Program-made: the position numbers and the translations under genes
From: Macrostomum lignano
Lineage: Eukaryota
Direction of reading: 5' to 3'
DNA length: 51,914 bases
Assembly: GCA_002269645.1 (NCBI GenBank)
Contig: NIVC01003508.1
Coordinates: 1 to 51,914, forward strand
Shown here: positions 1 to 42,827 of the stretch, in pieces
Layout of the letters: each line of letters starts with the position of its first letter
How positions within the stretch are numbered: position 1 is the first letter of the stretch
Notes under the pieces: model-generated
What the model was told of the DNA's origin: nothing
Database searches by the model: none
The model's input: the letters and a program-made list of their open reading frames with translations, nothing else

Positions 1-3000
1 CAAAATTGTGTTAATTTGCTTTAGAGTTTCTTTTACAGGTAAGTTGCATTTTTGGTCAAAAAGTAAGTTGCATGGCCAGTGTAAATCAGGGGGTTGCAGA
101 TGTATGGTATATGTAATGACTGTGCATTACTCCTAGGTTTATTAACTAATTGACTAACTTTAAGACTAAAATTTGCATGAATGTTCAATTACCTTATATG
201 CATTGTGCATTCAATTATGGTATCATTTGTTTTGATTATGTAGCACTGTTGTCAATGTGCACATGAGTATAAATATATTGAGCAAGACCCAAATGTCTCC
301 AACTGACTGAATTGAATTCAATTAAATAAAAACACAACAGTATACAAAAAGCATTGAATTATGTGACATCATTGCATAAATTCTGCTAAACAATCCTTTG
401 CTATAATAAAGTAAATATAAAAATTATGCAATAAATTAGGTTTTCAAATTATATACTAAATTTTTCAATTGTTGCTACTTGCTAGTAAATGATATACTTT
501 AATCAATAGATTTATTTTACTATTTAGTTTTACTAATTATTTTCATTTTAAATGAGGTTTCATTTTTTGCAGTTATTTGCTATATCTATTGCTAGTTGCA
601 TTATTTCTGTGCTTGTTAATCAGACAATTTTTATTGGCATACAATTTACTAAAACGCTTAATTGGTATACTTTACTGGCATACACTTTTCTAGATAGCAA
701 AATACTTTTTAGCATAAATTTAACACTATCCACATTATGGGTCAGTGTAAATTATAAGGTATATAACAAATGGTATGAAGAGGCACACATCTTTTGCCAC
801 TAGTAAACAAGCTTCTTTTTAGATGCAGGTTTTCATACTACTTGACAAACCTAGTTTTGTATGAATGAAAAGGAACTTTAATAATCTCTGAAAATGATCT
901 TAGAATCATAGAAAATGTAAATCTCTACTTCTCCCATTTTCTCTATTAGCATATTTTCTCTTCATGTCTATAATTTTCCTTTGTCTTTTTCTATTTCTCT
1001 CCAATCTCTTCTTTCTTCTCTTGCTTCTTTCTCTCTTTCTCACTTTCTCTAGCATTAATACCCAGCTTGTTAATAATACAAGAATACTCAGTATTTAGCA
1101 TTAATACTCAGCTTGGTTTATATTCAAGAACAGTTTTAAACTAAATTTGTTAATTTGATAGTGTAATTGTTCAAATTGCTCTTTCTTTAGAGTTTATATG
1201 TTTACTAGGTACGTCCAGAAGGATATTTAATTAATGTGTAAAACATTTGAAAGTCTAGAGTCATTAGAAAGTAGAAAACCATCTTTCATTTTAGTATTAA
1301 ATTTTGTATATAACAGAGTGTATACCTCAGAGGATCCATAACAATACTAACTACTAACTACTTGCAGTAAGAACGCAAGTGCACATAGCAGTTGAATTAC
1401 ACGGGCTATAAAATCTGTTCAGCTTCCCGATAGACCGTTGCCTGCTTTAGTTTAGACGCGAGAAAGCCGCGCCTTGTCATTTTCAATGGATAAAGTGCTT
1501 GTAAAAGTGTAACCAATCCACGCTTTTGACTGGGGCTACAACGCAGAAGGGAAGCCACTTTGCCACTATAGTTCAGGCCTATTTGCTCAGGCAGAGGATG
1601 CGGAAGGAACTGTTCTCTTTCTTCCGCTGTGAGAACCCTTAGCTGGCAGTTCTCTCTATTTTAGTACCTGAGTTCTGTCTGGCTGCCAGGTACTTAAAAA
1701 CTGTGTCGCCACATGACGCTGCATAGTCCCCTCGGCCAGGGACATGCTTTTTCTCCCCTAGCTGCTCTAGCCCTCAACTCCCCCCCCATTATTCTCTTTT
1801 TTCCAGCCTCACAGCTGCATCCATTATCGCTGCTGGGAGGGAAGGCTGGGACTCTGGCATTAATCTGCTGCTCTGTCCCAAACTCCCGGCTCCATTCTTC
1901 TCGGACTCAGAATAGCCGCCTCAAGCCCCCCAGAGCGTCAGCAGCCAGCGGCCATGCTCTGCAATTTGCTATCGGCCGGCCAGCCAATGTCTGCGGAGGC
2001 TTCGGCCCCCGCCGTTCGCCGCACTACAAAATGCTTCTACCGCCAGCCCAGCCTCCTAATTCACCGCCTCCTTCATCTTGACTATTCCAACCGGCTGCAG
2101 CTGTTCAAGTTTCCCAGTTCAACTCAGCCTGACTGTCTAATTGTCTGTCTCCAATGCGCCTGTCCCGAGTTGGCACCTGTCAGCAGCAGCAGCGAATTCC
2201 CATTGTTTGCGGCTAGGGAATTCAAATAGCAGGTGAGTATCGCCATAAATATTTAGTTATTTAGTCACAGTTGTACTCAGACTCATCTTTCAGCTAGCCT
2301 GCTGACAATTGTCCGTTAGCAATGCTTACGGCAGTGCCAGTCTCCATGCGGCTTCCTTAGAATCCTAAAAAAGTTTATCCCATCTAGGGAAATCTTCCAT
2401 CCAGCTGTCTCTGTGTGTGCGCGCGCGCAGTTTATTTTTCTACAGCTTTCAAATGCCAAGCCTCTTAGCGGGATGGGGATTCCGACTTGCATTTTTTGGA
2501 CTTTTTATTTGCCGCTCCCCCCCCCCACACCCACCGTCTATCGTGGCCGCAGATCTCGGCTGCGGCGATTGAAGGCTTGAAACTTTGACCGCTGTTGGCG
2601 GATATTTGTTGTCATTATTCCTGTGGCCCGCTGGAATAAATTCTTCAAGCAGTGGGAAGGGGAGATACGGAGGAGGGAATTCGGAGAATTCGCTGCGGCC
2701 CCGGCCCGGCTCTCTCATTAAAGGTGCGCAGCAAGCCAGGCGGGCCCTGATTGTTGATTAGGGAGGCCCCGGCTCTGGGGGCTTCGGTTGGAATCGCATT
2801 ATTGGAGCCCAGTCCAGCCCGCTGCCTCTCCGGCCTTCTTAGCCGTTCAATTGGATTCATCAGGCCGGCCTGTCCTGATCTCATCGCGTGAGGCAGCGCG
2901 GATGAGGCAGCCCGATGATGATGTTGCTTTTAAGATGCAGCGGGGTTTGCAGTCACACTTGAGCTGCGCTATCGAGAGTGAGTCAGCCAAATCAGCCAAG

Positions 3001-6000
3001 TCATTCCTTGTTAGTTCCCAATTTGAGTTCAGCAAAACACGCATCAGTCATTCCCGAGCTCAAGCCGTCCTTGTAAACAAAAACAGGAGATTTTCTCGGC
3101 TTTTTTTATTGCGTGACGTCATTTCAGGTGAAGTGTTGATGATGATGGGGCCGGGATGCTCAGCTTCTCAGCTGGTACGAGTATGGGGATCCGCTGCTCA
3201 TCTCATCAACTTTCCATTCCGGGAGTTGGGGGGGGGCAAGCGACCGCTTGATGCCGCTGCCCGATCCGCTTGCAATCAATGAATGCGGGGAGCTGCCGCT
3301 TGTCCTCATCGGTAATCGGAGAGCCCGGCCCCGGGTCTGCATATTTCAAGAGATTCCATTCTGTTGCTAAGTGCCCCTCCTGGCCAGCCTCGCCTCCTGT
3401 TACTCGGCTGCTCTCAACGCACACTCTAAGAAGCTACCTGCGTCTTGGCGCTGGATGTATAACTGAGCTGAGATGAACTGGCCTAGAAGCTCTCGTCTTC
3501 TCTCCTAGCTGGCCAATCGATGACCATCGAGGTCCTGATGCTTCTGCCGAGCTGTAGGTGCCGCTTCGGGGATCTGCACTCGTATAGACCAGATTCCCCC
3601 GAGCTGGTTCGGTGCTCCGTCAGAGCAGAAGTCTGGCCGCTGCCTGCTGCGCTTTTAATTGAAAGCACCCGACCTTGGCTTGCTTATCGATCGAGGCTGT
3701 TCTCGGAGCCTGTTCTCCTCTGACCGGCTGGGGAGTTCCTCAGCGCTGTTTTGCTACTTTTTATTTATTTTGACTCCCATAGTGCGCTGGATCGGATACT
3801 GTAATGCCCTGTCACGCTGTCTGTTTACAGGCACAACGGTTGGCTTGTCGCAGAATCGAAGGTGACACAGCAGGCCCCGTCCCTAATTTATTCATCGGCT
3901 CCGCTAGTTGGCTGTTGCTGTGCAGTTTCGCTGCCAGACGAGAAACGAGGCTTGAAGGAAATGAAGACGAAGCATCGGGGAGGGGGAGATGAGGAAGGGC
4001 GGGCGAGTTCGAGGAGGGGAGATTCGCTTCAGCCGATCTAGTTCATCATCTTGTCTTGTATGTCAGGAAATTTTATGAAGGTTGAAGATGTTTTAGCCAT
4101 GGGAATTCACTTTCCTGGCTTAGGCCGGGCCCCGCCTCCTCCCTGGCTGTTTTACTCGGCCGGGACCAAACCTCAGGAAGGAAAGAATTTTTAATCATTT
4201 CCAAGTAGCTTCCACTTTCCCTTTTGCCTGGCTTCGCTCCGTGTATATATTGTGTGCGCAGGGCCTCGGGGCCGGGATGGCGAGGATGGCCCTCCTTCTC
4301 TCTTCTCTAACTCTCTTTTTTCTCTTCACTCGTTTCTCATTCCTGTGTGATAGAAGGATGCGGCTGAGACGGGCGGAGGATTCCAGGATGAGCGGCGGCA
4401 ATGCAACTTTGCTACGCGTCCTGTTGGACTGGGACGCCGCCTCCCCCCATTTTCTAACTTTTCGCACTACGGCGGGCGCCATTGCCTTGGCTTATTAGCA
4501 AATCCCCTGCCTGTCTGGGCGATCTTGTTTCAGCCAGTAGTTCGCTTCTTTTCCTCTCCCCTTGCTTCGTCACTATCTCTCTCTCTCTTGAGTCCTCGGC
4601 CACCAGCGCCTGGTCACTCGGTCTTATCGCTGCTGCCCATCTCATCCCTATGCTTGCTCGGACTTGGGAGCGCACTGTTACTTTTACTGCCTGCTGCGGC
4701 CCGCTTCCCAGCCTCCTTTGCTCCATCTGCCATCCCGGGCTCCTTATTCCCATCAGCTTTCGAGTCATTAACTTGCTAGCAGTTGGCTGTTGTTGAGCTC
4801 ATTCTCTATACTGCCCTGGTGCTCAGTCACTCTCTTAATCCTAACCCAGTGCTTCTGAGCTGAGTGACCTCTGGCATGTGTCTGTGCGACTGTTGCAACT
4901 GTAATCACTTTTCACTTTATAGAGGCTGCTACAAAGTGGCAAATGCCAAAAATCATTTGCCCTGTTAACTGCAGCCATCTCGTGTCCTGCAGCTGCAGCT
5001 GGGACTGCTCCGCTCCCCCCACCCACCCCCAGCGGAAACCAATTTCTACCCCGGAAGCTGTCAATCAAGGCCAATGCTGATTGCAGATCCGCAGCCGGCT
5101 CTGCCCGGACTATCCAGTTTTTTGGGTTTTTTATGAAGCATCAGCCGTGCTATTCAATATTGACATCAAAATTTGGCTGCTATTTCGGTCACACAGCCTC
5201 GCCCCCTGACTACTTAGTGTCTTATAAGTGTCACTGTTTTGTTTAGCGGTAAAAGTGCACGATTGTTTTCCCTAGAGAAGCCCCCCCCCCTATCTGTTCG
5301 GCTTCACCGTGTACGTATCCCACGACTGGGCCTGGCCTGCGGCCTGTGGGATTCGCGGCTTGCCCCGATCCCTGCAGATTAACTAATTGTACCGGACAGA
5401 CTGGCCGACTGCCTGAAAATCAGTGAAGAAGAATTGGTCCAGAGCCTTGTGAAAAGGAAAATTTCCCGATGGGTTTCTTTCCCCTTCCCTGCCGCGACAG
5501 AATATCCTTGTCACGCGTACAGCCTCTGTTGTTATCCCATTGCTGGCGATTCGCTAGCTCTGAGGATTAGTAAACAGTGGGCTCGAATTTCTTAGCATAA
5601 CTGTTTGTCCCTCGGAGACCAGTGTGTTTACTAGCCGCTGGGTCACCTGTCCGCACCTGGGCTGCGATTTCAACCAGATTTATTTATCTGCCTGTGCCCT
5701 TCGATACTACTCAGTTCGGGACACTGCGCCAGCAGCCGCTTGTTCAACAGTCTGCTATTCTCTCGAGGGTTGGGGGGTATGCTGTGCTCTTAGACTATTT
5801 ACATGCTTCGAAGCCCCCTGGATTCCAATGCCTCTCTGTCTGACCTGTGGCTGGCTGGAGATCAAGTGCCGAATCAGTGGAGCTGCGCAGTTCAGGCGCG
5901 CCTCTCCGCCTCTATGGCTTTGGAAAGCCAATAAAGCGCTCCTTATGAGCCACTTCCTTCCTCTTCAGACGCCGCCGCCGTCACATGTCCCCATGCTGCC

Positions 6001-14443: not shown

Positions 14444-17400
14444 GAATGGATTGCTAATCTAGCCTATCATGGATGCAGGAATAGAATGGATTGCTAATCT
14501 AGCCTACATGGATGCAGGAATAGAATGGATTGCTAATCTAGCCTACATGGATGCAGGAATAGAATGGATTGCTAATCTAGCCTATCATGGATGCAGGAAT
14601 AGAATGGATTGCTAATCTAGCCTATCATGGGTGCAGGAATATAATGGATTGCTAATCTAGCCTATCATGGGTGCAGGAATAGAATGGATTGCTAATCTAG
14701 CCCATCATGGATGCAGGAATAGAATGGATTGCTAATCTAGCCTATCATGGGTGCAGGAATAGAATGGATTGCTAATCTAGCCTATCATGGTTGCAGGAAT
14801 AGAATGGATTGCTAATCTAGCCCATCATGGGTGCTGGAATAGAATGGATTGCTAATCTAGCCTATCATGGTTGCAGGAATAGAATGGATTGCTAATCTAG
14901 CCTATCATGGGTGCAGGAATAGAATGGATTGCTAATCTAGCCTATCATGGTGCAGGAATAGAATGGATTGCTAATCTAGCCTATCATGGGTGCAGGAATA
15001 GAATGGATTGCTAATCTAGCCTATCATGGGTGCAGGAATAGAATGGATTGCTAATCTAGCCTATCATGGGTGCAGGAATAGAATGGATTGCTAATCTAGC
15101 CTATCATGGGTGCAGGAATAGAATGGATTGCTAATCTAGCCTATCATGGATGCAGGAATAGAATGGATTGCTAATCTAGCCTATCATGGATGCAGGAATA
15201 GAATGGATTGCTAATCTAGCCTATCATGGATGCAGGAATAGAATGGATTGCTAATCTAGCCTATCATGGATGCAGGAATAGAATGGATTGCTAATCTAGC
15301 CTATCATGGATGCAGGAATAGAATGGATTGCTAATCTAGCCTATCATGGATGCAGGAATAGAATGGATTGCTAATCTAGCCTATCATGGATGCAGGAATA
15401 GAATGGATTGCTAATCTAGCCTATCATGGATGCAGGAATAGAATGGATTGCTAATCTAGCCTATCATGGATGCAGGAATAGAATGGATTGCTAATCTAGC
15501 CTATCATGGATGCAGGAATAGAATGGATTGCTAATCTAGCCTATCATGGATGCAGGAATAGAATGGATTGCTAATCTAGCCTATCATGGATGCAGGAATA
15601 GAATGGATTGCTAATCTAGCCTATCATGGATGCAGGAATAGAATGGATTGCTAATCTAGCCTATCATGGATGCAGGAATAGAATGGATTGCTAATCTAGC
15701 CTATCATGGGTGCAGGAATAGAATGGATTGCTAATCTAGCCTATCATGGATGCAGGAATAGAATGGATTGCTAATCTAGCCTATCATGGATGCAGGAATA
15801 GAATGGATTGCTAATCTAGCCTATCATGGATGCAGGAATAGAATGGATTGCTAATCTAGCCTATCATGGGTGCAGGAATAGAATGGATTGCTAATCTAGC
15901 CTATCATGGATGCAGGAATAGAATGGATTGCTAATCTAGCCTATCATGGATGCAGGAATAGAATGGATTGCTAATCTAGCCTATCATGGTGCAGGAATAG
16001 AATGGATTGCTAATCTAGCCTATCATGGATGCAGGAATAGAATGGATTGCTAATCTAGCCTATCATGGGTGCAGGAATAGAATGGATTGCTAATCTAGCC
16101 TATCATGGGTGCAGGAATAGAATGGATTGCTAATCTAGCCCATCATGGATGCAGGAATAGAATGGATTGCTAATCTAGCCTATCATGGATGCAGGAATAG
16201 AATGGATTGCTAATCTAGCCTATCATGGTGCAGGAATAGAATGGATTGCTAATCTAGCCTATCATGGATGCAGGAATAGAATGGATTGCTAATCTAGCCT
16301 ATCATGGATGCAGGAATAGAATGGATTGCTAATCTAGCCTATCATGGATGCAGGAATAGAATGGATTGCTAATCTAGCCTATCATGGGTGCAGGAATAGA
16401 ATGGATTGCTAATCTAGCCTATCATGGTGCAGGAATAGAATGGATTGCTAATCTAGCCTATCATGGATGCAGGAATAGAATGGATTGCTAATCTAGCCTA
16501 TCATGGGCAGGAATAGAATGGATTGCTAATCTAGCCTATCATGGATGCAGGAATAGAATGGATTGCTAATCTAGCCTATCATGGATGCAGGAATAGAATG
16601 GATTGCTAATCTAGCCTATCATGGATGCAGGAATAGAATGGATTGCTAATCTAGCCTATCATGGATGCAGGAATAGAATGGATTGCTAATCTAGCCTATC
16701 ATGGATGCAGGAATAGAATGGATTGCTAATCTAGCCTATCATGGATGCAGGAATAGAATGGATTGCTAATCTAGCCTATCATGGATGCAGGAATAGAATG
16801 GATTGCTAATCTAGCCTATCATGGATGCAGGAATAGAATGGATTGCTAATCTAGCCTATCATGATGCAGGAATAGAATGGATTGCTAATCTAGCCTATCA
16901 TGGATGCAGGAATAGAATGGATTGCTAATCTAGCCTATCATGGATGCAGGAATAGAATGGATTGCTAATCTAGCCTATCATGGATGCAGGAATAGAATGG
17001 ATTGCTAATCTAGCCTATCATGGATGCAGGAATAGAATGGATTGCTAATCTAGCCTATCATGGATGCAGGAATAGAATGGATTGCTAATCTAGCCTATCA
17101 TGGATGCAGGAATAGAATGGATTGCTAATCTAGCCTATCATGGATGCAGGAATAGAATGGATTGCTAATCTAGCCTATCATGGATGCAGGAATAGAATGG
17201 ATTGCTAATCTAGCCTATCATGGATGCAGGAATAGAATGGATTGCTAATCTAGCCTATCATGGGTGCAGGAATAGAATGGATTGCTAATCTAGCCTATCA
17301 TGGGTGCAGGAATAGAATGGATTGCTAATCTAGCCTATCATGGGTGCAGGAATAGAATGGATTGCTAATCTAGCCTATCATGGGTGCAGGAATAGAATGG

Positions 17401-20400
17401 ATTGCTAATCTAGCCTATCATGGTGCAGGAATAGAATGGATTGCTAATCTAGCCTATCATGGGTGCAGGAATAGAATGGATTGCTAATCTAGCCTATCAT
17501 GGATGCAGGAATAGAATGGATTGCTAATCTAGCCTATCATGGATGCAGGAATAGAATGGATTGCTAATCTAGCCTATCATGGATGCAGGAATAGAATGGA
17601 TTGCTAATCTAGCCTATCATGGATGCAGGAATAGAATGGATTGCTAATCTAGCCTATCATGGATGCAGGAATAGAATGGATTGCTAATCTAGCCTATCAT
17701 GGATGCAGGAATAGAATGGATTGCTAATCTAGCCTATCATGGATGCAGGAATAGAATGGATTGCTAATCTAGCCTATCATGGATGCAGGAATAGAATGGA
17801 TTGCTAATCTAGCCTATCATGGATGCAGGAATAGAATGGATTGCTAATCTAGCCTATCATGGTGCAGGAATAGAATGGATTGCTAATCTAGCCTATCATG
17901 GTGCAGGAATAGAATGGATTGCTAATCTAGCCTATCATGGGTGCAGGAATAGAATGGATTGCTAATCTAGCCTATCATGGGTGCAGGAATAGAATGGATT
18001 GCTAATCTAGCCTATCATGGATGCAGGAATAGAATGGATTGCTAATCTAGCCTATCATGGGCAGGAATAGAATGGATTGCTAATCTAGCCTATCATGGAT
18101 GCAGGAATAGAATGGATTGCTAATCTAGCCTATCATGGATGCAGGAATAGAATGGATTGCTAATCTAGCCTATCATGGATGCAGGAATAGAATGGATTGC
18201 TAATCTAGCCTATCATGGTGCAGGAATAGAATGGATTGCTAATCTAGCCTATCATGGATGCAGGAATAGAATGGATTGCTAATCTAGCCTATCATGGATG
18301 CAGGAATAGAATGGATTGCTAATCTAGCCTATCATGGATGCAGGAATAGAATGGATTGCTAATCTAGCCTATCATGGATGCAGGAATAGAATGGATTGCT
18401 AATCTAGCCTATCATGGGTGCAGGAATAGAATGGATTGCTAATCTAGCCTATCATGGGTGCAGGAATAGAATGGATTGCTAATCTAGCCTATCATGGGTG
18501 CAGGAATAGAATGGATTGCTAATCTAGCCTATCATGGGTGCAGGAATAGAATGGATTGCTAATCTAGCCTATCATGGGTGCAGGAATAGAATGGATTGCT
18601 AATCTAGCCTATCATGGATGCAGGAATAGAATGGATTGCTAATCTAGCCTATCATGGATGCAGGAATAGAATGGATTGCTAATCTAGCCTATCATGGTGC
18701 AGGAATAGAATGGATTGCTAATCTAGCCTATCATGGATGCAGGAATAGAATGGATTGCTAATCTAGCCTATCATGGATGCAGGAATAGAATGGATTGCTA
18801 ATCTAGCCTATCATGGATGCAGGAATAGAATGGATTGCTAATCTAGCCTATCATGGTGCAGGAATAGAATGGATTGCTAATCTAGCCTATCATGGTGCAG
18901 GAATAGAATGGATTGCTAATCTAGCCTATCATGGATGCAGGAATAGAATGGATTGCTAATCTAGCCTATCATGGTGCAGGAATAGAATGGATTGCTAATC
19001 TAGCCTATCATGGATGCAGGAATAGAATGGATTGCTAATCTAGCCTATCATGGATGCAGGAATAGAATGGATTGCTAATCTAGCCTATCATGGTGCAGGA
19101 ATAGAATGGATTGCTAATCTAGCCTATCATGGATGCAGGAATAGAATGGATTGCTAATCTAGCCTATCATGGATGCAGGAATAGAATGGATTGCTAATCT
19201 AGCCTATCATGGTGCAGGAATAGAATGGATTGCTAATCTAGCCTATCATGGATGCAGGAATAGAATGGATTGCTAATCTAGCCTATCATGGATGCAGGAA
19301 TAGAATGGATTGCTAATCTAGCCTATCATGGATGCAGGAATAGAATGGATTGCTAATCTAGCCTATCATGGTGCAGGAATAGAATGGATTGCTAATCTAG
19401 CCTATCATGGGTGCAGGAATAGAATGGATTGCTAATCTAGCCTATCATGGGTGCAGGAATAGAATGGATTGCTAATCTAGCCTATCATGGGTGCAGGAAT
19501 AGAATGGATTGCTAATCTAGCCTATCATGGATGCAGGAATAGAATGGATTGCTAATCTAGCCTATCATGGGTGCAGGAATAGAATGGATTGCTAATCTAG
19601 CCTATCATGGATGCAGGAATAGAATGGATTGCTAATCTAGCCTATCATGGATGCAGGAATAGAATGGATTGCTAATCTAGCCTATCATGGATGCAGGAAT
19701 AGAATGGATTGCTAATCTAGCCTATCATGGATGCAGGAATAGAATGGATTGCTAATCTAGCCTATCATGGGCAGGAATAGAATGGATTGCTAATCTAGCC
19801 TATCATGGATGCAGGAATAGAATGGATTGCTAATCTAGCCTATCATGGATGCAGGAATAGAATGGATTGCTAATCTAGCCTATCATGGATGCAGGAATAG
19901 AATGGATTGCTAATCTAGCCTATCATGGGTGCAGGAATAGAATGGATTGCTAATCTAGCCTATCATGGGTGCAGGAATAGAATGGATTGCTAATCTAGCC
20001 TATCATGGGTGCAGGAATAGAATGGATTGCTAATCTAGCCTATCATGGATGCAGGAATAGAATGGATTGCTAATCTAGCCTATCATGGGTGCAGGAATAG
20101 AATGGATTGCTAATCTAGCCTATCATGGGTGCAGGAATAGAATGGATTGCTAATCTAGCCTATCATGGATGCAGGAATAGAATGGATTGCTAATCTAGCC
20201 TATCATGGATGCAGGAATAGAATGGATTGCTAATCTAGCCTATCATGGATGCAGGAATAGAATGGATTGCTAATCTAGCCTATCATGGGTGCAGGAATAG
20301 AATGGATTGCTAATCTAGCCTATCATGAGCAGGAATAGAATGGATTGCTAATCTAGCCTATCATGGATGCAGGAATAGAATGGATTGCTAATCTAGCCTA

Positions 20401-21737
20401 TCATGGATGCAGGAATAGAATGGATTGCTAATCTAGCCTATCATGGTGCAGGAATAGAATGGATTGCTAATCTAGCCTATCATGGTGCAGGAATAGAATG
20501 GATTGCTAATCTAGCCTATCATGGGTGCAGGAATAGAATGGATTGCTAATCTAGCCTATCATGGTGCAGGAATAGAATGGATTGCTAATCTAGCCTATCA
20601 TGGATGCAGGAATAGAATGGATTGCTAATCTAGCCTATCATGGGTGCAGGAATAGAATGGATTGCTAATCTAGCCTATCATGGTGCAGGAATAGAATGGA
20701 TTGCTAATCTAGCCTATCATGGGTGCAGGAATAGAATGGATTGCTAATCTAGCCTATCATGGATGCAGGAATAGAATGGATTGCTAATCTAGCCTATCAT
20801 GGGTGCAGGAATAGAATGGATTGCTAATCTAGCCTATCATGGGTGCAGGAATAGAATGGATTGCTAATCTAGCCTATCATGGATGCAGGAATAGAATGGA
20901 TTGCTAATCTAGCCTATCATGGATGCAGGAATAGAATGGATTGCTAATCTAGCCTATCATGGGTGCAGGAATAGAATGGATTGCTAATCTAGCCTATCAT
21001 GGTGCAGGAATAGAATGGATTGCTAATCTAGCCTATCATGGATGCAGGAATAGAATGGATTGCTAATCTAGCCTATCATGGGTGCAGGAATAGAATGGAT
21101 TGCTAATCTAGCCTATCATGGGTGCAGGAATAGAATGGATTGCTAATCTAGCCTATCATGGATGCAGGAATAGAATGGATTGCTAATCTAGCCTATCATG
21201 GATGCAGGAATAGAATGGATTGCTAATCTAGCCTATCGTGGGTCCAGGATTAGAATGGATTGCTAATCTAGCCTATCGTGAGTGCAGGAATAGAATGGAT
21301 TGCTAATCTAGCCTATCGTGAGTGCAGGAATAGAATGGATTGCTAATCTAGCCTATCGTGAGTGCAGGAATAGAATGGATTGCTAATCTAGCCTATCGTG
21401 AGTGCAGGAATAGAATGGATTGCTAATCTAGCCTATCGTGAGTGCAGGAATAGAATGGATTGCTAATCTAGCCTATCGTGAGTGCAGGAATAGAATGGAT
21501 TGCTAATCTAGCCTATCATGGGTGCAGGAATAGAATGGATTGCTAATCTAGCCTATCATGGGTGCAGGAATAGAATGGATTGCTAATCTAGCCTATCATG
21601 GATGCAGGAATAGAATGGATTGCTAATCTAGCCTATCGTGAGTGCAGGAATAGAATGGATTGCTAATCTAGCCTATCATGGGTGCAGGATTAGAATGGAT
21701 TGCTAATCTAGCCTATCGTGAGTGCAGGAATAGAATG
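14444..21737. repeat. 40-bp satellite ATAGAATGGATTGCTAATCTAGCCTATCATGG(A/G)TGCAGGA, ~180 copies, 7.3 kb
   Basis: Near-perfect 40-bp periodicity; the supplied track lists no ORF here. Confidence 0.99.
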
Positions 21738-34869: not shown

Positions 34870-36050
34870 CCGCCCTCCGATTCCTGAAGAATCGCCCTCC
34901 GATTCCAGAAGAATCGCCCTCCAATCCCTCAAGAATCGCCCTCCGATTCCTGAAGAATCTCCCTCCGATTCCAGAAGAATCGCCCTCCAATCCCTCAAGA
35001 ATCGCCCTCCGATTCCTGAAGAATCTCCCTCCAATTCCTGAAGAATCGCCCTCCGATTCCTGAAGAATCTCCCTCCAATTCCTGAAGAATCGCCCTCCGA
35101 TTCCTGAAGAATCTCCCTCCAATTCCTGAAGAATCGCCCTCCAATTCCTGAAGAATCGCCCTCCAATTCCTGAAGAATCGCTCTCCAATTCCTGAAGAAT
35201 CTCCCTCCAATTCCTGAAAAATCGCCCTCCAATTCCTGAAGAATCGCCCTCCCATTCCTGTAGAATCTCCCTTCAATTCCTGAAAAATCGCCCTCCGATT
35301 CCTGAAGAATCGCCATCCGATTCCTGAAAAATCGCCCTCTAATTCCTGAAGAATCGCCCTCCGATTCCTGAAGAATCGCTCTCCAATTCCTGAAGAATCG
35401 CCCTCCGATTCCTGAAAAATCGCCCTCCAATTCCTGAAGAATCGCTCTCCAATTCCTGAAGAATCTCCCTCCAATTCCTGAAGAATCGCCCTCCGATTCC
35501 TGAAGAATCGCCCTCCGATTCCTGAAAAATCGCCCTCCAATTCCTGAAAAATCGCCATCCGATTCCTGAAGAATCGCCCTCCAATTCCTGAAGAATCGCC
35601 CTCCGATTCCTGAAAAATCGCCCTCTAATTCCTGAAGAATCGCCCTCCGATTCCTGAAGAATCGCCCTCCCATTCCTGTAGAATCTCCCTTCAATTCCTG
35701 AAGAATCGCTCTCCAATTCCTGAAGAATCGCCCTCCGATTCCTGAAAAATCGCCCTCCAATTCCTGAAGAATCGCCCTCCGATTCCTGAAAAATCGCCCT
35801 CCAATTCCTGAAGAATCGCTCTCCAATTCCTGAAGAATCTCCCTCCAATTCCTGAAAAATCGCCCTCCAATTCCTGAAGAATCGCCCTCCCATTCCTGTA
35901 GAATCTCCCTTCAATTCCTGAAGAATCGCCCTCCGATTCCTGAAGAATCGCCATCCGATTCCTGAAAAATCGCCCTCTAATTCCTGAAGAATCGCCCTCC
36001 AATTCCTGAAGAATCGCCCTCCAATTCCTGAAGAATCGCCCTCCAATTCC
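34870..36050. repeat. 22-bp minisatellite TTCCTGAAGAATCGCCCTCC(G/A)A, ~54 copies
   Basis: Direct periodicity. Confidence 0.97.
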
Positions 36051-37164: not shown

Positions 37165-40100
37165 ATGCGCAGCTCCCTCATCGGCCTACTTCGCGGCCTG
37201 CGGCCACCAGCCGCGCAGACTCGAACCCCGGCCCGCACAATATTCATGATGGGGCCGTACGACCCGCGCACTCCGGAGGACGAGGAACCCGGCGTGAAAG
37301 TCCGCGTCAAGCAGGAGGTGCCGGAGGAGGCCAAGCTCAGCTTCCGGCAGCGCATGGCCGAGTGGCGCGCCCGCCACCACCCGGAGCCGCCCGCCTGCAA
37401 CATCGGCCTGCCGCGGTCGCTGCTCACCGCCTCCCGGCCGGAGCCGCCCGATGAGGTGCGAGCGAAATTATTGTGGCTTCTGTTCTACCAGTGATGGACT
37501 GGAGTTCTCCCTAATAGTGTAGGGCGCCGCAAAAGAATAATAAGGTGCTCAAAGCACTTTAATGAAGGCATCAGAAGCACATTAAACAGGCCGCCAGAAG
37601 CACATTAAACAGGCCGCCAGAAGCACATTAAACAGGCCGCCTGAAGCACATTAAACAGGCCGCCAGAAGCACATTAAACAGGCCGCCAGAAGCACATTAA
37701 ACAGGCCGCCAGAAGCACAACTAAACATGTGATGCTTGGAAGCACACGCGCTAGAAAGGCATTGGAACCGCACTAAGTGCGCGAGTTTAAAGCATTTTAT
37801 ACAGCACGTGCACTACAAATATGGGGTTCAATGCCACTGACCGATATGTGTTGAAAATAACTATATTTTCTATTCCGCCACAGAAGCGCCAGCAGGAGCT
37901 GGAGCGCCTGGCCCGCAATCAGCAGCTGCGCGTCGACCTCGACGCGGTGGAGCTCGCCTGGGAGTCGGAGCGGCGGCCCGAGCACGCCCTGTCTGCCGCC
38001 AGGCACTACTCCATCATGGAGCACCTGTTCGGGACCGGCTGCTTCTTCTACCCGGTGGTGCCGCTGAGGGCTCACTTTGCCGATCCGGATCTGCCCGGCC
38101 GAGTTCGTCCCATTGCCCTTGGCAACGTAATGACGCCGAGACAGGTGAGATTTCCCCATACTGTCTCATTTTTATAGAGCAGTCCAACTGATGACGTAAT
38201 TTGCGCCTTAGCCAGCTTCCTTATAACTGGAGCTGATCGATGCTGAGTAAAATCTGTCTGATGGCTGCTCTGTCGTGTCATTTTCTGGTAGAATGGCAAG
38301 ATCCTGTTGGGATAAGATCTGGTCTTTGTTGGGATCTTGCATTGAGATCTAGTCTTTGTCGGGATCTTGCATTCAGATCTGGTCTTTGTCGCGATCTTAC
38401 AATTCAGATCTGGTCGTTGTCGGGATGTTACAATTCAGATCTGGTCTTTGTCGGGATGTTACAATTCAGATCTGGTCTTTGTCGCGATCTTACAATTCAG
38501 ATCTGGTCTTTGTCGGGATGTTACAATTCAGATCTGGTCTTTGTCGGGATGTTACAATTCAGATCTGGTCTTTGTCGCGATCTTACAATTCAGATCTGGT
38601 CTTTGTCGGGATGTTACAATTCAGATCAGGTCTTTGTCGGGATGTTACAATTCAGATCTGGTCTTTGTCGGGATGTTACAATTCAGATCTGGTCTTTGTT
38701 GGGATCTTGCATTGAGATCTGGTCTTTGTCGGGATGTTACAATTCAGATCTGGTCTTTGTCGGGATGTTACAATTCAGATCTGGTCTTTGTCGGGATGTT
38801 ACAATTCAGATCTGGTCTTTGTCGGGATCTTGCATTCAAATCTGCAAATCTTGAATGCAAGATCGCGTACGATAGTCTTCTTCGCCAGCCTCTGCGCGTG
38901 ATGACGTAATTTGCGCCTTAGCCTCGCGTGACGGACGAGCGCCTAACTCGTTTTAAAAAACGTGCGCGAGTGACTGCTGACAGAATCTGTCTGACCGCAG
39001 TGCCTGGCTTATATATCACCTATTATCTATTTTATAGTACTCTCAGTAGTCAATCAGTTGGGATATTATCACACTGTAGCTAGATAGTGCTGTTTCGCTG
39101 CTCGTGATGACGTAATTTGCGCCTTAGCCTTGCGCGACGGACGAGCGCCTAACTCGTCGTAAAAACGTGCGCAAGTGACTGCTGATTCAGTCTGTCTGAT
39201 GCAGTATCCAGCACTCATTGTTCTATAAGAACTCGGTCACGTGATGATGTAATTTGCGCCTTAGCGATTGCAGCTTCTTGACTATTTGTTTTTAGTTGCT
39301 AGGCTGCAGTTGACTGCTGAGCACATTCAATCTGATGACTGCCTTCGGTTATGGCGCCTCCTTATCCCCTCTTCGACTTAGAGAATCTAACTCAGATCTC
39401 AGACTGGGGTAGCAACCCTCCCAGATCCCCAACTGGGATAGCAACCCTCCCAGATCCCAAACTGGGATAGCAACCCTCCCAGATCCCAAACTGGGATAGC
39501 AACCCTCCCAGATCCCCAACTGGGATAGCAACCCTCCCAGATTCCCTTACTGGGATAGCAACCCTCCCAGATTCCCTTACTGGGATAGCAACCCTCCCAG
39601 ATTCCCTTACTGGGATAGCAACCCTCCCAGATTCCCTTACTGGGATAGCAACCCTCCCAGATTCCCTTACTGGGATAGCAACCCTCCCAGATCCCAAACT
39701 GGGATAGCAACCCTCCCAGATCCCCAACTGGGATAGCAACCCTCCCAGATTCCCTTACTGGGATAGCAACCCTCCCAGATTCCCTTACTGGGATAGCAAC
39801 CCTCCCAGATTCCCTTACTGGGATAGCAACCCTCCCAGATCCCAAACTGGGATAGCAACCCTCCAGATCCCCAACTGGGATAGCAACCCTCCCAGATTCC
39901 CTTACTGGGATAGCAACCCTCCCAGATTCCCTTACTGGGATAGCAACCCTCCCAGATTCCCTTACTGGGATAGCAACCCTCCCAGATCCCAAACTGGGAT
40001 AGCAACCCTCCCAGATCCCCAACTGGGATAGCAACCCTCCCAGATTCCCTTACTGGGATAGCAACCCTCCCAGATTCCCTTACTGGGATAGCAACCCTCC

Positions 40101-42827
40101 CAGATTCCCTTACTGGGATAGCAACCCTCCCAGATTCCCTTACTGGGATAGCAACCCTCCCAGATTCCCTTACTGGGATAGCAACCCTCCCAGATTCCCT
40201 TACTGGGATAGCAACCCTCCCAGATCCCAAACTGGAATAGCAGCCCTCCCAGATCCCAACTGGGATAGCAACCCTCCCAGATCCCAAACTGGGATAGCAG
40301 CCCTCCCAGATCCCAGCCAAAATCTCCGCTGTCCCGCAATTCCAGTGTTCCGAGGCCCCAGACCTGCGCTGGCAGGAGCCGCAGGATTTCAACAGCAGCA
40401 GCTCTGGTCAGCAGCAGCAGCTGAAGTGGGCGGTGCTGCTCACCTGTCCCGATGAGCACCTGCAGTCGGCGGAGCGCGAGTACGCGCACTGGCTGGTCAC
40501 CGACATCCCCGGCAGCGGCCGCGTGGCGGAGGGCCGCGTCCGCCTCCCCTACCTGCAGCCAATCCCGCCGCTGGGCACCGGCCTGCACCGCTACGCGCTG
40601 GTGCTCTTCGTGCAGTCCGCGCCTCTGGAGGACCAGCAGGAGAACCAACAGCTGGCCGGAGACCGACTGGCTGAGCGCGACTTCAGCACCGCTGAGTTCT
40701 ACCGGCGCCACCAGGACCGGCTGACCCCGGCCGGCCTCTGCTTCTTCCAGGCCGCCTGGGACCCGTCGGTGCGGACCGTCTACCGGCATCGGCTGACCGA
40801 CATGGGCGCCGAGCCCGTCTTCGAGTTCCGCTGGCCGGCGCCCTACAGACCGAAGATGCAGCAGTTCGCCTTTTCCGAGCCCTTCAATCTGTGAGCACCC
40901 TGGGGATTGAGAGATCTCGTCTCATTTGATCCACCTCATGTCTCATTTGATCCACCTCATGTCTCATTTGATCCACCTCATGTCTCATTTGATCCACCTC
41001 ATGTCTCATTTGATCCACCTCATGTCTCATTTGATCCACCTCATGTCTCATTTGATCCACCTCATGTCTCATTTGATCCACCTCATGTCTCATTTGATCC
41101 ACCTCATGTCTCATTTGATCCACCTCATGTCTCATTAGATTCACCTCATGTATCATTTGATCCAACTCATGTCTCATTAGATTCACCTCATGTCTCATTT
41201 GATCCAACTCATGTCTCATTAGATTCACCTCATGTCTCATTTGATCCAACTCATGTCTCATTTGATCCAACTCATGTCTCATTTGATCCAACTCATGTCT
41301 CATTAGATTCACCTCATGTCTCATTAGATTCACCTCATGTCTCATTAGATTCACCTCATGTCTCATTGGATGGATCTCATATCTCTTTGGATGCACCTCA
41401 TGTCTCATTAGATTCACCTCATGTCTCATTGGATGCATCTCATGTCTTGTTGGATGCATCTCATGTGTGGTGACACGGGGGGGATCCGGGTCGTTTCTCC
41501 CGGAGTTCGGGCTCGTGTTCTGACCCTCACTGCGGTCGCCCACCCACTCGCGTACGACGCGGAGTCGGGAGGGAAAAGCAGGCGGTTTGAGCAGCCCAAT
41601 TGCCCCAGCACGCGTACGACGCTCCAATCCCGCCTAGAGCCTAAGCAGCTAACCCCAAAGAACAACACGGCAAAAGGTCTCACGGTTTCGGTGGTGCGCA
41701 GTCTATTTCAGCGCAGTTTGAAACGCAGGCAGAAGCGCAGAGAACGAATGCTCGGGGTCGCACAGGAAAAGAGCGCAGGGTCGCAGAGAACAGGGGCTCG
41801 TACACGAACAGAGCACAGCACAGAAATAGGTTGTCGCTATTGGAAACGTAGCGCAAATTCAGTAGCAAAAGCCGGTGGGGCCGCAAGTCGAGACGGGCCA
41901 CAACACTTAACTAAAAACAACTCAGCAGGGGGCTCACCTAAATAGACCGGCGGAGCGGGGTGGGGCAGAGGGTAGCCACACATGCAGCTAAGAGAGGCCA
42001 ACCCCCCAACCAGCGCAAAGGAGGGGTGGGCTCAGCCAATCAGCCGGCGCCACGGCCCAAACAAACAGCGCGACTCCCCCAGCTAAGCCCAAAAACTGAC
42101 TGCACCCAGGCTCACCCAAACCCCAACGATAGCAGAGATAGACATATTGGTGGGCCGGTTTTCACCGGTACGCGCGAGAAAGTACACGTAAATAAACAAC
42201 ACGGGAAGGACCATGCGTCCTTTAAACGGCTGGGAGAGGAATACTCACTACACATGTCTCATTGGATGCATCTCATATCTCTTTGGATGCACCTCATGTC
42301 TCATTAGATTCACCTCATGTCTCATTGGATGCATCTCATATCTCTTTGGATGCACCTCATGTCTCATTTGATCCACCTCATGTCTCATTGGATGCATCTC
42401 ATATCTCTTTGGATGCACCTCATGTCTCATTAGATTCACCTCATGTCTCATTGGATGCATCTCATATCTCTTTGGATGCACCTCATGTCTCATTAGATCC
42501 ACCTCATGTCTCATTAGATGCATCTCATGTCTCATTTGATCCACCTCATTTCTCATTGAATCTCACTAGATGTACATTATTTCCTAGCTATACCTGGTCA
42601 TCCCACTCCACCCGCCCAGCTACCTGGACAAGTACCGGGACACCAAGGACATCGCCGAGGAGACCCTGAAGGAGAAGCTGAAGTCAGTGCACCCGTTCCT
42701 GGGCCGCCGCAGGCCGGAGTCCAAGTATCCCCTGGCGGTGCCGGCCGAGGGCTACCAGCCCAGCTGGCTGAAGGAGCGAGAGGCTCAGAAGATTCTGCGC
42801 CAAGGGCAGTGGCGCGACCTCGATTAG
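37165..42827 (+). CDS. MRPL38: Mitochondrial ribosomal protein mL38 (PEBP domain); join(37165..37455,37884..38144,40346..40890,42620..42827), 434 aa
   Basis: The N-terminus resembles a mitochondrial presequence (Arg/Leu/Ser-rich, no acidic residues: MRSSLIGLLRGLRPPAAQTRTPART). Conserved blocks include NIGLP, VDLDAVELAWE, GNVMTP, EHL..EREYAHWLVTDIPG, YLQPIPPLGTGLHRYALVLFVQ, TPAGLCFFQAAWD, EPVFEF and PFNL|YLDKYRD. Introns are GT-AG with phases 0,0,2, and the joined length of 1305 nt is divisible by 3. The start could instead be the ATG at 37138. Confidence 0.92.
37572..37718. repeat. 23-bp repeat CAGAAGCACATTAAACAGGCCGC, ~6 copies (mL38 intron 1)
   Basis: AAGCAC recurs at 37621 and 37644. Confidence 0.93.
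38176..38271 (+). ncRNA. SNORD16: C/D box snoRNA, U16/SNORD16-like, copy 1
   Basis: Box C TGATGA at 38189, guide CGTAATTTGCGC plus D' CTTA, C'-like TGCTGA, box D CTGA at 38258-38261, and a 9-bp terminal stem AGAGCAGTC/GGCTGCTCT. The guide is antisense to conserved 18S rRNA GCGCAAAUUAC. Confidence 0.8.
38315..38840. repeat. 31-bp minisatellite CAGATCTGGTCTTTGTCGGGATGTTACAATT (mL38 intron 2)
   Basis: ACAATT recurs at 38461 and 38492. Confidence 0.96.
38892..39000 (+). ncRNA. SNORD16: C/D box snoRNA, U16/SNORD16-like, copy 2
   Basis: GTGATGA-CGTAATTTGCGC-CTTA...TGCTGA...CTGA (38991-38994), with terminal stem CTGCG/CGCAG. Confidence 0.82.
39097..39205 (+). ncRNA. SNORD16: C/D box snoRNA, U16/SNORD16-like, copy 3
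   Basis: GTGATGA-CGTAATTTGCGC-CTTA...TGCTGA...CTGA (39196-39199), with terminal stem GCTGC/GCAGT. A recent paralog of copy 2. Confidence 0.82.
39235..39340 (+). ncRNA. SNORD16: C/D box snoRNA, U16/SNORD16-like, copy 4
   Basis: GTGATGA-TGTAATTTGCGC-CTTA, internal hairpin TGCAGC...GCTGCA, TGCTGA, CTGA (39332-39335), and terminal stem GGTCA/TGACT. Confidence 0.8.
39403..40313. repeat. 30-bp minisatellite CTGGGATAGCAACCCTCCCAGATTCCCTTA (mL38 intron 2)
   Basis: Direct periodicity; ends ~30 nt before the exon 3 acceptor. Confidence 0.97.
40917..41465. repeat. 21-bp minisatellite TCATTTGATCCACCTCATGTC, left part (mL38 intron 3)
   Basis: The overlying ORF repeats HVSFDPP (7 aa). Confidence 0.96.
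41466..42252 (+). mobile_element. 787-bp solo LTR (Ty3/Gypsy-like) inserted in the 21-bp minisatellite
   Basis: Termini TGTGGTGA...TCACTACA (TG..CA, imperfect 8-bp inverted repeat) are flanked by a 4-bp TSD, CATG (41462-41465 and 42253-42256). Removing the element restores the repeat unit. AATAAA at 42191 near the 3' end suggests plus orientation. Confidence 0.8.
42253..42560. repeat. 21-bp minisatellite, right part (mL38 intron 3)
   Basis: The same unit resumes after the LTR. Confidence 0.94.

Follow-up and report, generated by a model that had tools for sequence, protein, structure and literature searches.

A probable cluster of four divergent U16/SNORD16-like box C/D snoRNA genes within a single mL38 intron of the flatworm Macrostomum lignano

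A single intron of the gene for the mitochondrial ribosomal protein mL38 (MRPL38) of the flatworm Macrostomum lignano carries four related sequences (copies 1 to 4 below) which, judging from their sequence, are probably tandemly duplicated genes for small nucleolar RNAs (snoRNAs) of the box C/D class, lying in sense with their host and belonging to the U16/SNORD16 family as divergent members. They were found on contig NIVC01003508.1 of assembly GCA_002269645.1, which was analysed over its whole 51,914 nt; this stretch of DNA is referred to as the window (51.9 kb). Both the RNA family and this type of gene arrangement are known, and current understanding is not overturned; what appears mildly new is a recognisable guide-snoRNA orthologue in a flatworm, and its occurrence as an intronic C/D cluster of four paralogues.

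The four copies are marked by a 24-mer (TGATGAYGTAATTTGCGCCTTAGC) that occurs at 38189, 38899, 39105 and 39242, always on the + strand and with no mismatches. No fifth copy was found in the window at up to three mismatches, and the number expected by chance, taken from 100 shuffles, was 0 against the 4 observed. Box positions were found by script and also by reading the sequence, and the same layout was obtained from both: a C box (UGAUGA), one variable nucleotide (C in copies 1 to 3 and U in copy 4), the guide GUAAUUUGCGC, a CUUA D' box, about 30-54 nt of helix-forming spacer, a UGCUGA C' box, a further 10-11 nt and a CUGA D box. Copy 1 (38174-38273, +, 100 nt including its terminal stem) has its C box at 38189-38194, a 12-nt guide at 38195-38206, D' at 38207-38210, C' at 38241-38246 and D at 38258-38261. 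The corresponding C, D', C' and D boxes lie at 38899-38904, 38917-38920, 38975-38980 and 38991-38994 in copy 2 (38892-39000, +, 109 nt), at 39105-39110, 39123-39126, 39180-39185 and 39196-39199 in copy 3 (39097-39205, +, 109 nt) and at 39242-39247, 39260-39263, 39315-39320 and 39332-39335 in copy 4 (39234-39341, +, 108 nt), which is the most divergent of the set. The C and D boxes are thus present in all four copies and are spaced 73-96 nt apart, as expected for a box C/D snoRNA, and the D' (CUUA) and C' (UGCUGA) boxes are each one mismatch away from consensus and unchanged in all four. Copy 1 alone has in addition a consensus CUGA at 38232-38235, 5 nt before its C' box (GAGCUGAUCGAUGCUGA), which constitutes an alternative D'-like motif.

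Each copy is closed by a terminal stem whose sequence is its own. Counted as contiguous pairs with G-U allowed, the stems are 11 bp long in copy 1 (two of the pairs being G-U), 5 bp in copies 2 (CUGCG/CGCAG) and 3 (GCUGC/GCAGU) and 6 bp in copy 4. A first-pass annotation of this DNA had placed the 24-mer at the same four positions, each followed by a variable stem, a TGCTGA C'-like box and a CTGA D box, and all of these elements were located; it had also given each copy a different stem, rightly, but the lengths that it gave (9, 5, 5 and 5 bp) have to be replaced by those above. The stems were assessed copy by copy rather than by column-wise covariation because they lie at differing offsets and because the spacers cannot be aligned. 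For random pairs of flanks with the same geometry in this window the probability of a stem of at least 5 bp is 0.13, of at least 6 bp 0.068 and of at least 9 bp 0.0037, so that the four stems would arise jointly by chance with P below about 5e-6. In minimum free energy (MFE) folds every copy has an internal D'-C' helix, and three of them (copies 1, 3 and 4) also have the terminal stem; the MFE fold of copy 1, which has both the terminal and the internal stem, has z=-2.8.

Searched at Rfam gathering thresholds, the whole window gives no match. When the region 38100-39450 was searched in E-value reporting mode, the only mode that recovers SNORD16, family RF00138 (SNORD16) came top for all four copies, with scores of 33.9 bits for copy 1 (E=2.6e-4), 26.9 for copy 2, 30.4 for copy 3 and 23.7 for copy 4 and with E-values ranging from 2.6e-4 to 0.13. 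The 5' module of the copies, UGAUGA-N-GUAAUUUGCG-N-CUUA, is that of the Rfam consensus and of the RPL4-hosted U16 of vertebrates apart from the two N positions: in vertebrate U16, too, box C is followed by one nucleotide, by GUAAUUUGCG(U/C) and then by the non-consensus D' box CUUA. The likeness extends to the 18S nucleotide that is targeted under the D'+5 rule, to the internal helix between D' and C', to the 10-11-nt segment between C' and D, to a total length of about 100 nt and to an alignment over the full length of the model (positions 1-100). As the whole 5' module is shared, including the non-consensus CUUA and the register of the guide, common descent is favoured over convergence on the same target, and the copies are probably orthologues of U16/SNORD16. 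The core reading of the first-pass annotation, which had called them U16/SNORD16-like, is supported.

The positive control for this search was a metagenome contig (L004; Ga0065711_1015246, positions 954-4145), the sole contig with the U16 module from a metagenome scan. It is a fragment of a vertebrate RPL4 gene, not of a flatworm genome, and is probably host or contaminant DNA in the metagenome. It contains two SNORD16 genes (82 and 97 bits) and three SNORD18 genes, one per intron, and its U16 ends about 70 nt from the acceptor. Its U16 also has the loop UGCCUGCUGUC, which makes an accessory pairing of 11 bp with 18S GGCAGCAGGCG; accessory pairing of snoRNAs with 18S rRNA has been described (PMC5612246).

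The guide GUAAUUUGCGC is perfectly complementary over 11 bp to 18S GCGCAAAUUAC, a target sequence read from the eukaryotic SSU consensus. At this site the consensus of the Rfam SSU_rRNA_eukarya model is GCAGCAGGCGCGcAAAUUaCCCAAU, with nearly all positions at the top level of conservation. Five nucleotides upstream of CUUA the guide pairs with the A that opens GCGCAAAUUAC (AAAUUAC), in the same register as in vertebrate U16. It had been claimed earlier that the D'+5 nucleotide pairs with the A targeted by U16, and on the eukaryotic SSU consensus this is indeed so. Human SNORD16 is reported to guide methylation of 18S A484 (PMC5612246). Given the match in guide, target and register, the copies very probably guide a modification that is universally conserved, the 2'-O-methylation of the 18S adenosine equivalent to human A484. 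The 11-bp pairing was also found in 120 of 120 contigs of eukaryotic rDNA that a 23-nt probe had drawn from prokaryotic assemblies, although, because the probe includes the target, this is a positive control and not independent evidence. Yeast snR52 and plant U16 are presumed to guide modification of the equivalent 18S adenosine in the GCGCAAAUUAC stretch; these RNAs are independently transcribed or polycistronic and not intronic.

A second target, on the D side, was considered and dropped. A segment of copy 3 upstream of its D box (39186-39195, GAUUCAGUCUGU) can form 9-10 bp with the conserved 18S sequence ACAGA(U/C)UGA, which lies some 800 nt downstream of the site targeted by U16, but the pairing is limited to 7 bp in copies 1 and 2 and copy 4 offers no consistent match; because chance 9-bp matches are about as common, no D-side target is claimed. 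The assemblies from which the rDNA contigs were drawn are labelled as bacterial or archaeal, yet at least 120 of their contigs (L005-L124) hold the eukaryotic 18S motif GCAGCAGGCGCGCAAATTACCCA, which points to contamination by eukaryotic rDNA; L005, the only one of them to be checked, has a score of 349 bits with the eukaryotic SSU model. A scan of viral contigs for the 18S motif found none.

Comparison of the copies with each other indicates which parts have been kept. The 24-nt module of C box, guide and D' box has a pairwise identity of 96-100% and the C' and D boxes one of 100%, whereas the 30-nt flanks are at 44-57% and the spacers at 35-48%, both random levels, except that the spacers of copies 2 and 3 are 88% identical. 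Between these two copies four of the six spacer differences fall within two internal helices and pairing is kept in all of them (one C-G to U-A double change and two G-U/G-C changes). With boxes and guide conserved while flanks and spacers have become random, purifying selection is indicated; the first-pass annotation had argued likewise from conserved boxes and guide and diverged spacers, and the identities agree with it. These figures also bear on whether the likeness of the four repeats to snoRNAs might be accidental, the repeats being functionless DNA that belongs to a transposable element or satellite. Such an origin would suit a window that is rich in repeats (about 43% minisatellites) as well as the sub-threshold Rfam scores, but functionless repeats would not hold boxes and an rRNA guide while their flanks and spacers randomise, nor would four different, compensating terminal stems be expected of them, nor a 22-nt module shared with vertebrate U16 down to its odd CUUA D' box, and we regard this explanation as extremely improbable.

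Three more loci in the same M. lignano assembly (L001, L002 and L003) each carry all four copies. L002 and L003 are essentially identical to the window and L001 differs from it; all three are near-identical paralogues or alleles. Copies 1 to 3 are invariant across the four loci despite a changing minisatellite copy number. In about 720 nt of unique intron sequence L001 differs from the window by only three substitutions, all of which lie in copy 4 (L001 7875-7980): the nucleotide after box C (T>C), the D box (CUGA>CUGG) and a base of the 3' strand of the stem (T>A). As every L001 substitution hits copy 4, copies 1 to 3 look constrained and copy 4 looks to be under weaker constraint than they are. 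On these sequence grounds copies 1 to 3 are probably redundant working genes and the L001 version of copy 4 is probably dead.

It is accordingly possible, though we would not expect it, that only some of the copies are functional, with copy 4 and conceivably others being decaying duplicates, so that the locus would consist of one or two U16 genes plus relics. With 23.7 bits copy 4 scores lowest against SNORD16, its D-side guide differs, and it takes three of the three L001 substitutions, including the CUGA>CUGG change and the one that breaks the stem. In the copy 4 of the window, on the other hand, none of the C, D', C' and D boxes is damaged and neither is the guide, and both a terminal stem of 6 bp and a strong internal helix are present. 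Its boxes are intact while its spacer has diverged to a random level, and this requires past selection on copy 4 as well.

Several points weigh against the assignment of the four copies to functional U16 genes. All of them score below the RF00138 gathering score of 45 bits, the best reaching 33.9, so that the check with the Rfam SNORD16 model that had been suggested with the first-pass annotation succeeded only in part: SNORD16 is the best match for all four, but at 24-34 bits, compared with 82-97 bits for vertebrate U16. Nor are the four matches independent of one another, because the shared 24-mer provides most of the score. The pairing of loop UGCCUGCUGUC with 18S GGCAGCAGGCG is absent, and no accessory match of at least 9 bp was found in any M. 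lignano copy; in this comparison the loop with its 11-bp accessory pairing belongs to the vertebrate RNA only, and the C' box is UGCUGA in M. lignano rather than UGACGA. The low SNORD16 scores can be put down to these two differences, the missing loop and the different C' box. The nucleotide before UGAUGA is a purine in copies 2 to 4 but a C in copy 1. The L001-L003 loci, being nearly identical, add little evolutionary depth, and in L001 the D box of copy 4 is broken (CUGG) and its stem weakened. A crude de novo scan of the window for C/D snoRNAs against conserved rRNA 10-mers returned copies 2 to 4 and no other snoRNA; copy 1 was missed because it failed the purine filter.

The host gene is mL38. 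The exons flanking the copies encode a protein of the PEBP fold whose closest solved structures are those of mL38 in the mitoribosomes of human (chain 6nu2_6, E=1e-52, in a search of PDB structures) and pig, and an annotated Macrostomum lignano protein, PAA51076.1 (BOX15_Mlig010225g7; P0001), is 100% identical to it and contains both predicted junctions (...PPDE|KRQQ... and ...TPRQ|CSEAPDLRW...). The upstream exon (37884-38144, +) ends in ...GNVMTPRQ and the downstream exon (40346-40890, +; CSEAPDLRW...EPFNL) carries the PEBP domain, translation and splice junctions agreeing in both cases with the annotated protein. As the junctions agree, the borders of the intron can be set at 38145-40345 (+, 2201 nt, GT..AG, phase 0). 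Copy 1 begins 29 nt from the 5' splice site and is separated from copy 2 by 618 nt; 96 nt lie between copies 2 and 3 and 28 nt between copies 3 and 4, and copy 4 is 1004 nt from the 3' splice site. All four copies are therefore on the host strand (+) within one spliceosomal intron, which is the arrangement of an intronic snoRNA gene cluster. The first-pass annotation had named mL38 as the host and had remarked that no copy lies near the 3' splice site, the nearest being about 1 kb away; the structural match, the annotated protein and the measured distance support both statements.

The intron also contains two minisatellites. One, with a 31-bp unit and 17.2 units (38315-38844; repeat scan and paralogue alignment), stands between copy 1 and copies 2 to 4, where an earlier reader had noticed it, and is shorter by 154 nt (about 5 units) in L001. 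The other, with a 30-bp unit and about 31 units (39393-40314), follows copy 4 on the side of the 3' splice site and is strongly length-variable among the paralogues; here the indels between L001 and the window add up to about 890 columns of the alignment. At the 3' edge of the 31-bp array, 25 nt upstream of copy 2, there is a hairpin (38823-38867, +) with 17-nt arms that are 94% complementary and an 11-nt loop (-30.4 kcal/mol, z=-4.6), which may be an endonuclease entry site or processing signal or may simply be an inverted unit of the minisatellite.

Vertebrate SNORD16 is mono-intronic in rpl4, and the M. lignano arrangement departs from this in its host (mL38 in place of RPL4), in having four genes per intron instead of one and in their distance from the 3' splice site (1-2 kb as against about 70 nt). 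The lack of any copy at a vertebrate-type distance of about 70 nt, for which L004 provides the comparison, and the clustering itself, which is typical of independently transcribed units, would fit a polycistronic unit with its own promoter inside the mL38 intron, like the clusters of plants and yeast. However, the copies are on the host strand, the 29 nt that separate copy 1 from the 5' splice site offer hardly any space for a promoter, and the snoRNAs of invertebrate animals are mostly intronic, so that we consider such a unit very unlikely. As to the host, the mL38 genes of the barnacle Amphibalanus (which is intronless), the whipworm Trichuris and the fish Lampris contain no U16 guide and gave no snoRNA match, which makes the association of mL38 with U16 lineage-specific. 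Across eukaryotes, ancient snoRNAs have not kept the same host genes (PMC3511168).

Several snoRNA genes in one spliceosomal intron, in sense with a protein-coding host, are also found in rice, Drosophila and Caenorhabditis elegans, and 'intronic snoRNA clusters' are a recognised category. The C. elegans top-2 gene has three C/D snoRNAs in one intron (PMC11028025, Supplementary Table S1); for rice and Drosophila such clusters are recorded in the literature, those of Drosophila being mainly H/ACA. Unlike these clusters, which hold different snoRNAs, that of M. lignano consists entirely of paralogues with one guide, is interrupted and trailed by long minisatellites and comes from a phylum in which almost no guide snoRNAs have been found by homology. 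The features that the first-pass annotation had listed as unusual, namely the mL38 host, four copies per intron, the minisatellite and the distance from the 3' splice site, are all real, but their strangeness had been overstated: intronic clusters are documented, host switching from one phylum to another is to be expected and minisatellites are the local norm.

A pathway of expression can be proposed. The RNAs would be transcribed within the mL38 pre-mRNA, Snu13, Nop56, Nop58 and fibrillarin would assemble on the kink-turn of each C/D motif, and the resulting particles (snoRNPs) would 2'-O-methylate the 18S adenosine equivalent to human A484. Exonucleases entering from the ends of the debranched intron would be halted by the outer snoRNPs and would free at most one end each of copy 1 (5') and copy 4 (3'). 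As end-trimming cannot separate four snoRNPs in one intron, at least three endonucleolytic cuts would be needed, one in each of the spacers (618, 96 and 28 nt), if four separate snoRNAs of about 100-110 nt are to result. Such cuts would recall both the XendoU-type release known from Xenopus, with U16 as its first case, and the maturation of clusters in plants and Drosophila.

Endonucleolytic release, which the first-pass annotation had already suggested, is a reasonable proposal and has precedent. In Xenopus, cleavage of U16 competes with splicing. Frog oocytes produce certain intronic snoRNAs independently of splicing. XendoU was discovered, also in Xenopus, as an enzyme releasing intronic snoRNAs, and its first report concerned U16 processing. 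The M. lignano locus resembles this system in involving the U16 family and in a release that would not be achieved by exonucleolytic trimming of the debranched intron alone, and differs from it in that Xenopus has one U16 per RPL4 intron and in that for M. lignano the need for an endonuclease is deduced from geometry only. A dedicated endonucleolytic pathway may, for example, involve cleavage of the 38823-38867 hairpin or an enzyme of the EndoU type.

In plants and Drosophila, intronic clusters give rise to individual snoRNAs. In mammals, however, two or more snoRNAs in one intron constitute the configuration that gives rise to sno-lncRNAs (snoRNA-capped long non-coding RNAs; PMC11028025), and this genomic prerequisite is present here. 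Release could accordingly yield one or more sno-lncRNAs and not, or not only, four snoRNAs; an example would be an RNA of about 1.17 kb (38174-39341) that includes the 17-unit minisatellite. The position of copy 1 only 29 nt from the 5' splice site and the 618 nt of repeat that separates it from copy 2 would be in keeping with such an RNA, which is compatible with the four copies being U16 genes and does not exclude it. Against it stand not only the processing of the plant and Drosophila clusters just mentioned, which are described as snoRNA gene clusters, but also the minisatellite, whose copy number differs between paralogues, arguing against constraint on the intervening RNA. We also know of no sno-lncRNA outside mammals, and on balance we think this mode of release improbable.

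Two more specific outcomes, in which the intron would not be split into single snoRNAs in the usual way, may be mentioned together, although we would give them little credence: a stable sno-lncRNA, capped by U16 and presenting the 31-nt repeat in its 17 units, or a dedicated endonucleolytic pathway that competes with mL38 splicing. If the former were true it would be the first outside mammals known to us, and if the latter, the supply of 18S methylation to the cytosolic ribosome would be coupled inversely to the expression of a mitochondrial-ribosome protein. Whichever route is used, the locus is a compact natural test case of the way in which animal cells separate several C/D snoRNPs sharing an intron, by endonuclease or by sno-lncRNA formation.

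The wider interest of the four genes lies in part in their host organism. The annotation of guide snoRNAs in flatworms is very poor: when schistosome genomes were surveyed by homology, only U3 was recognised, and annotation with Rfam at gathering thresholds misses all four of the genes described here. M. lignano is a model for regeneration and stem cells and would now have a U16 orthologue, defined from its sequence, that predicts a specific 18S 2'-O-methylation. The change of host from RPL4 to mL38 would be another host switch, consistent with the 'constrained drift' view of snoRNA mobility (PMC3511168).

Some further features of the window and its paralogues were noted. The window contains at least 22 distinct minisatellite arrays with periods of 17-77 bp, the largest being 7.3 kb long (14444-21737); together they occupy about 22.5 kb of the 51.9 kb (about 43%), and minisatellites in the snoRNA intron are for this reason the local norm. 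Several arrays yield spurious sub-threshold Rfam microRNA matches, such as MIR2933 at 34921-36028, and the sub-threshold matches to MIR6459, MIR2933, mir-249 and Afu_191 were rejected as artefacts since they sit in minisatellites. A SNORD125-like match at 2815-2904 on the - strand (27.7 bits, E=0.37) was likewise rejected; it has a C-like box but is without a D box. Finally, a gene for an eIF3 subunit (PF08597) lies on the same strand only about 600-760 nt past mL38 (L001 11939-12718, L002 12445-13092 and L003 8679-9323), and one UniProt model (P0002) joins the two genes; their closeness suggests read-through or an operon-like layout in this trans-splicing flatworm.

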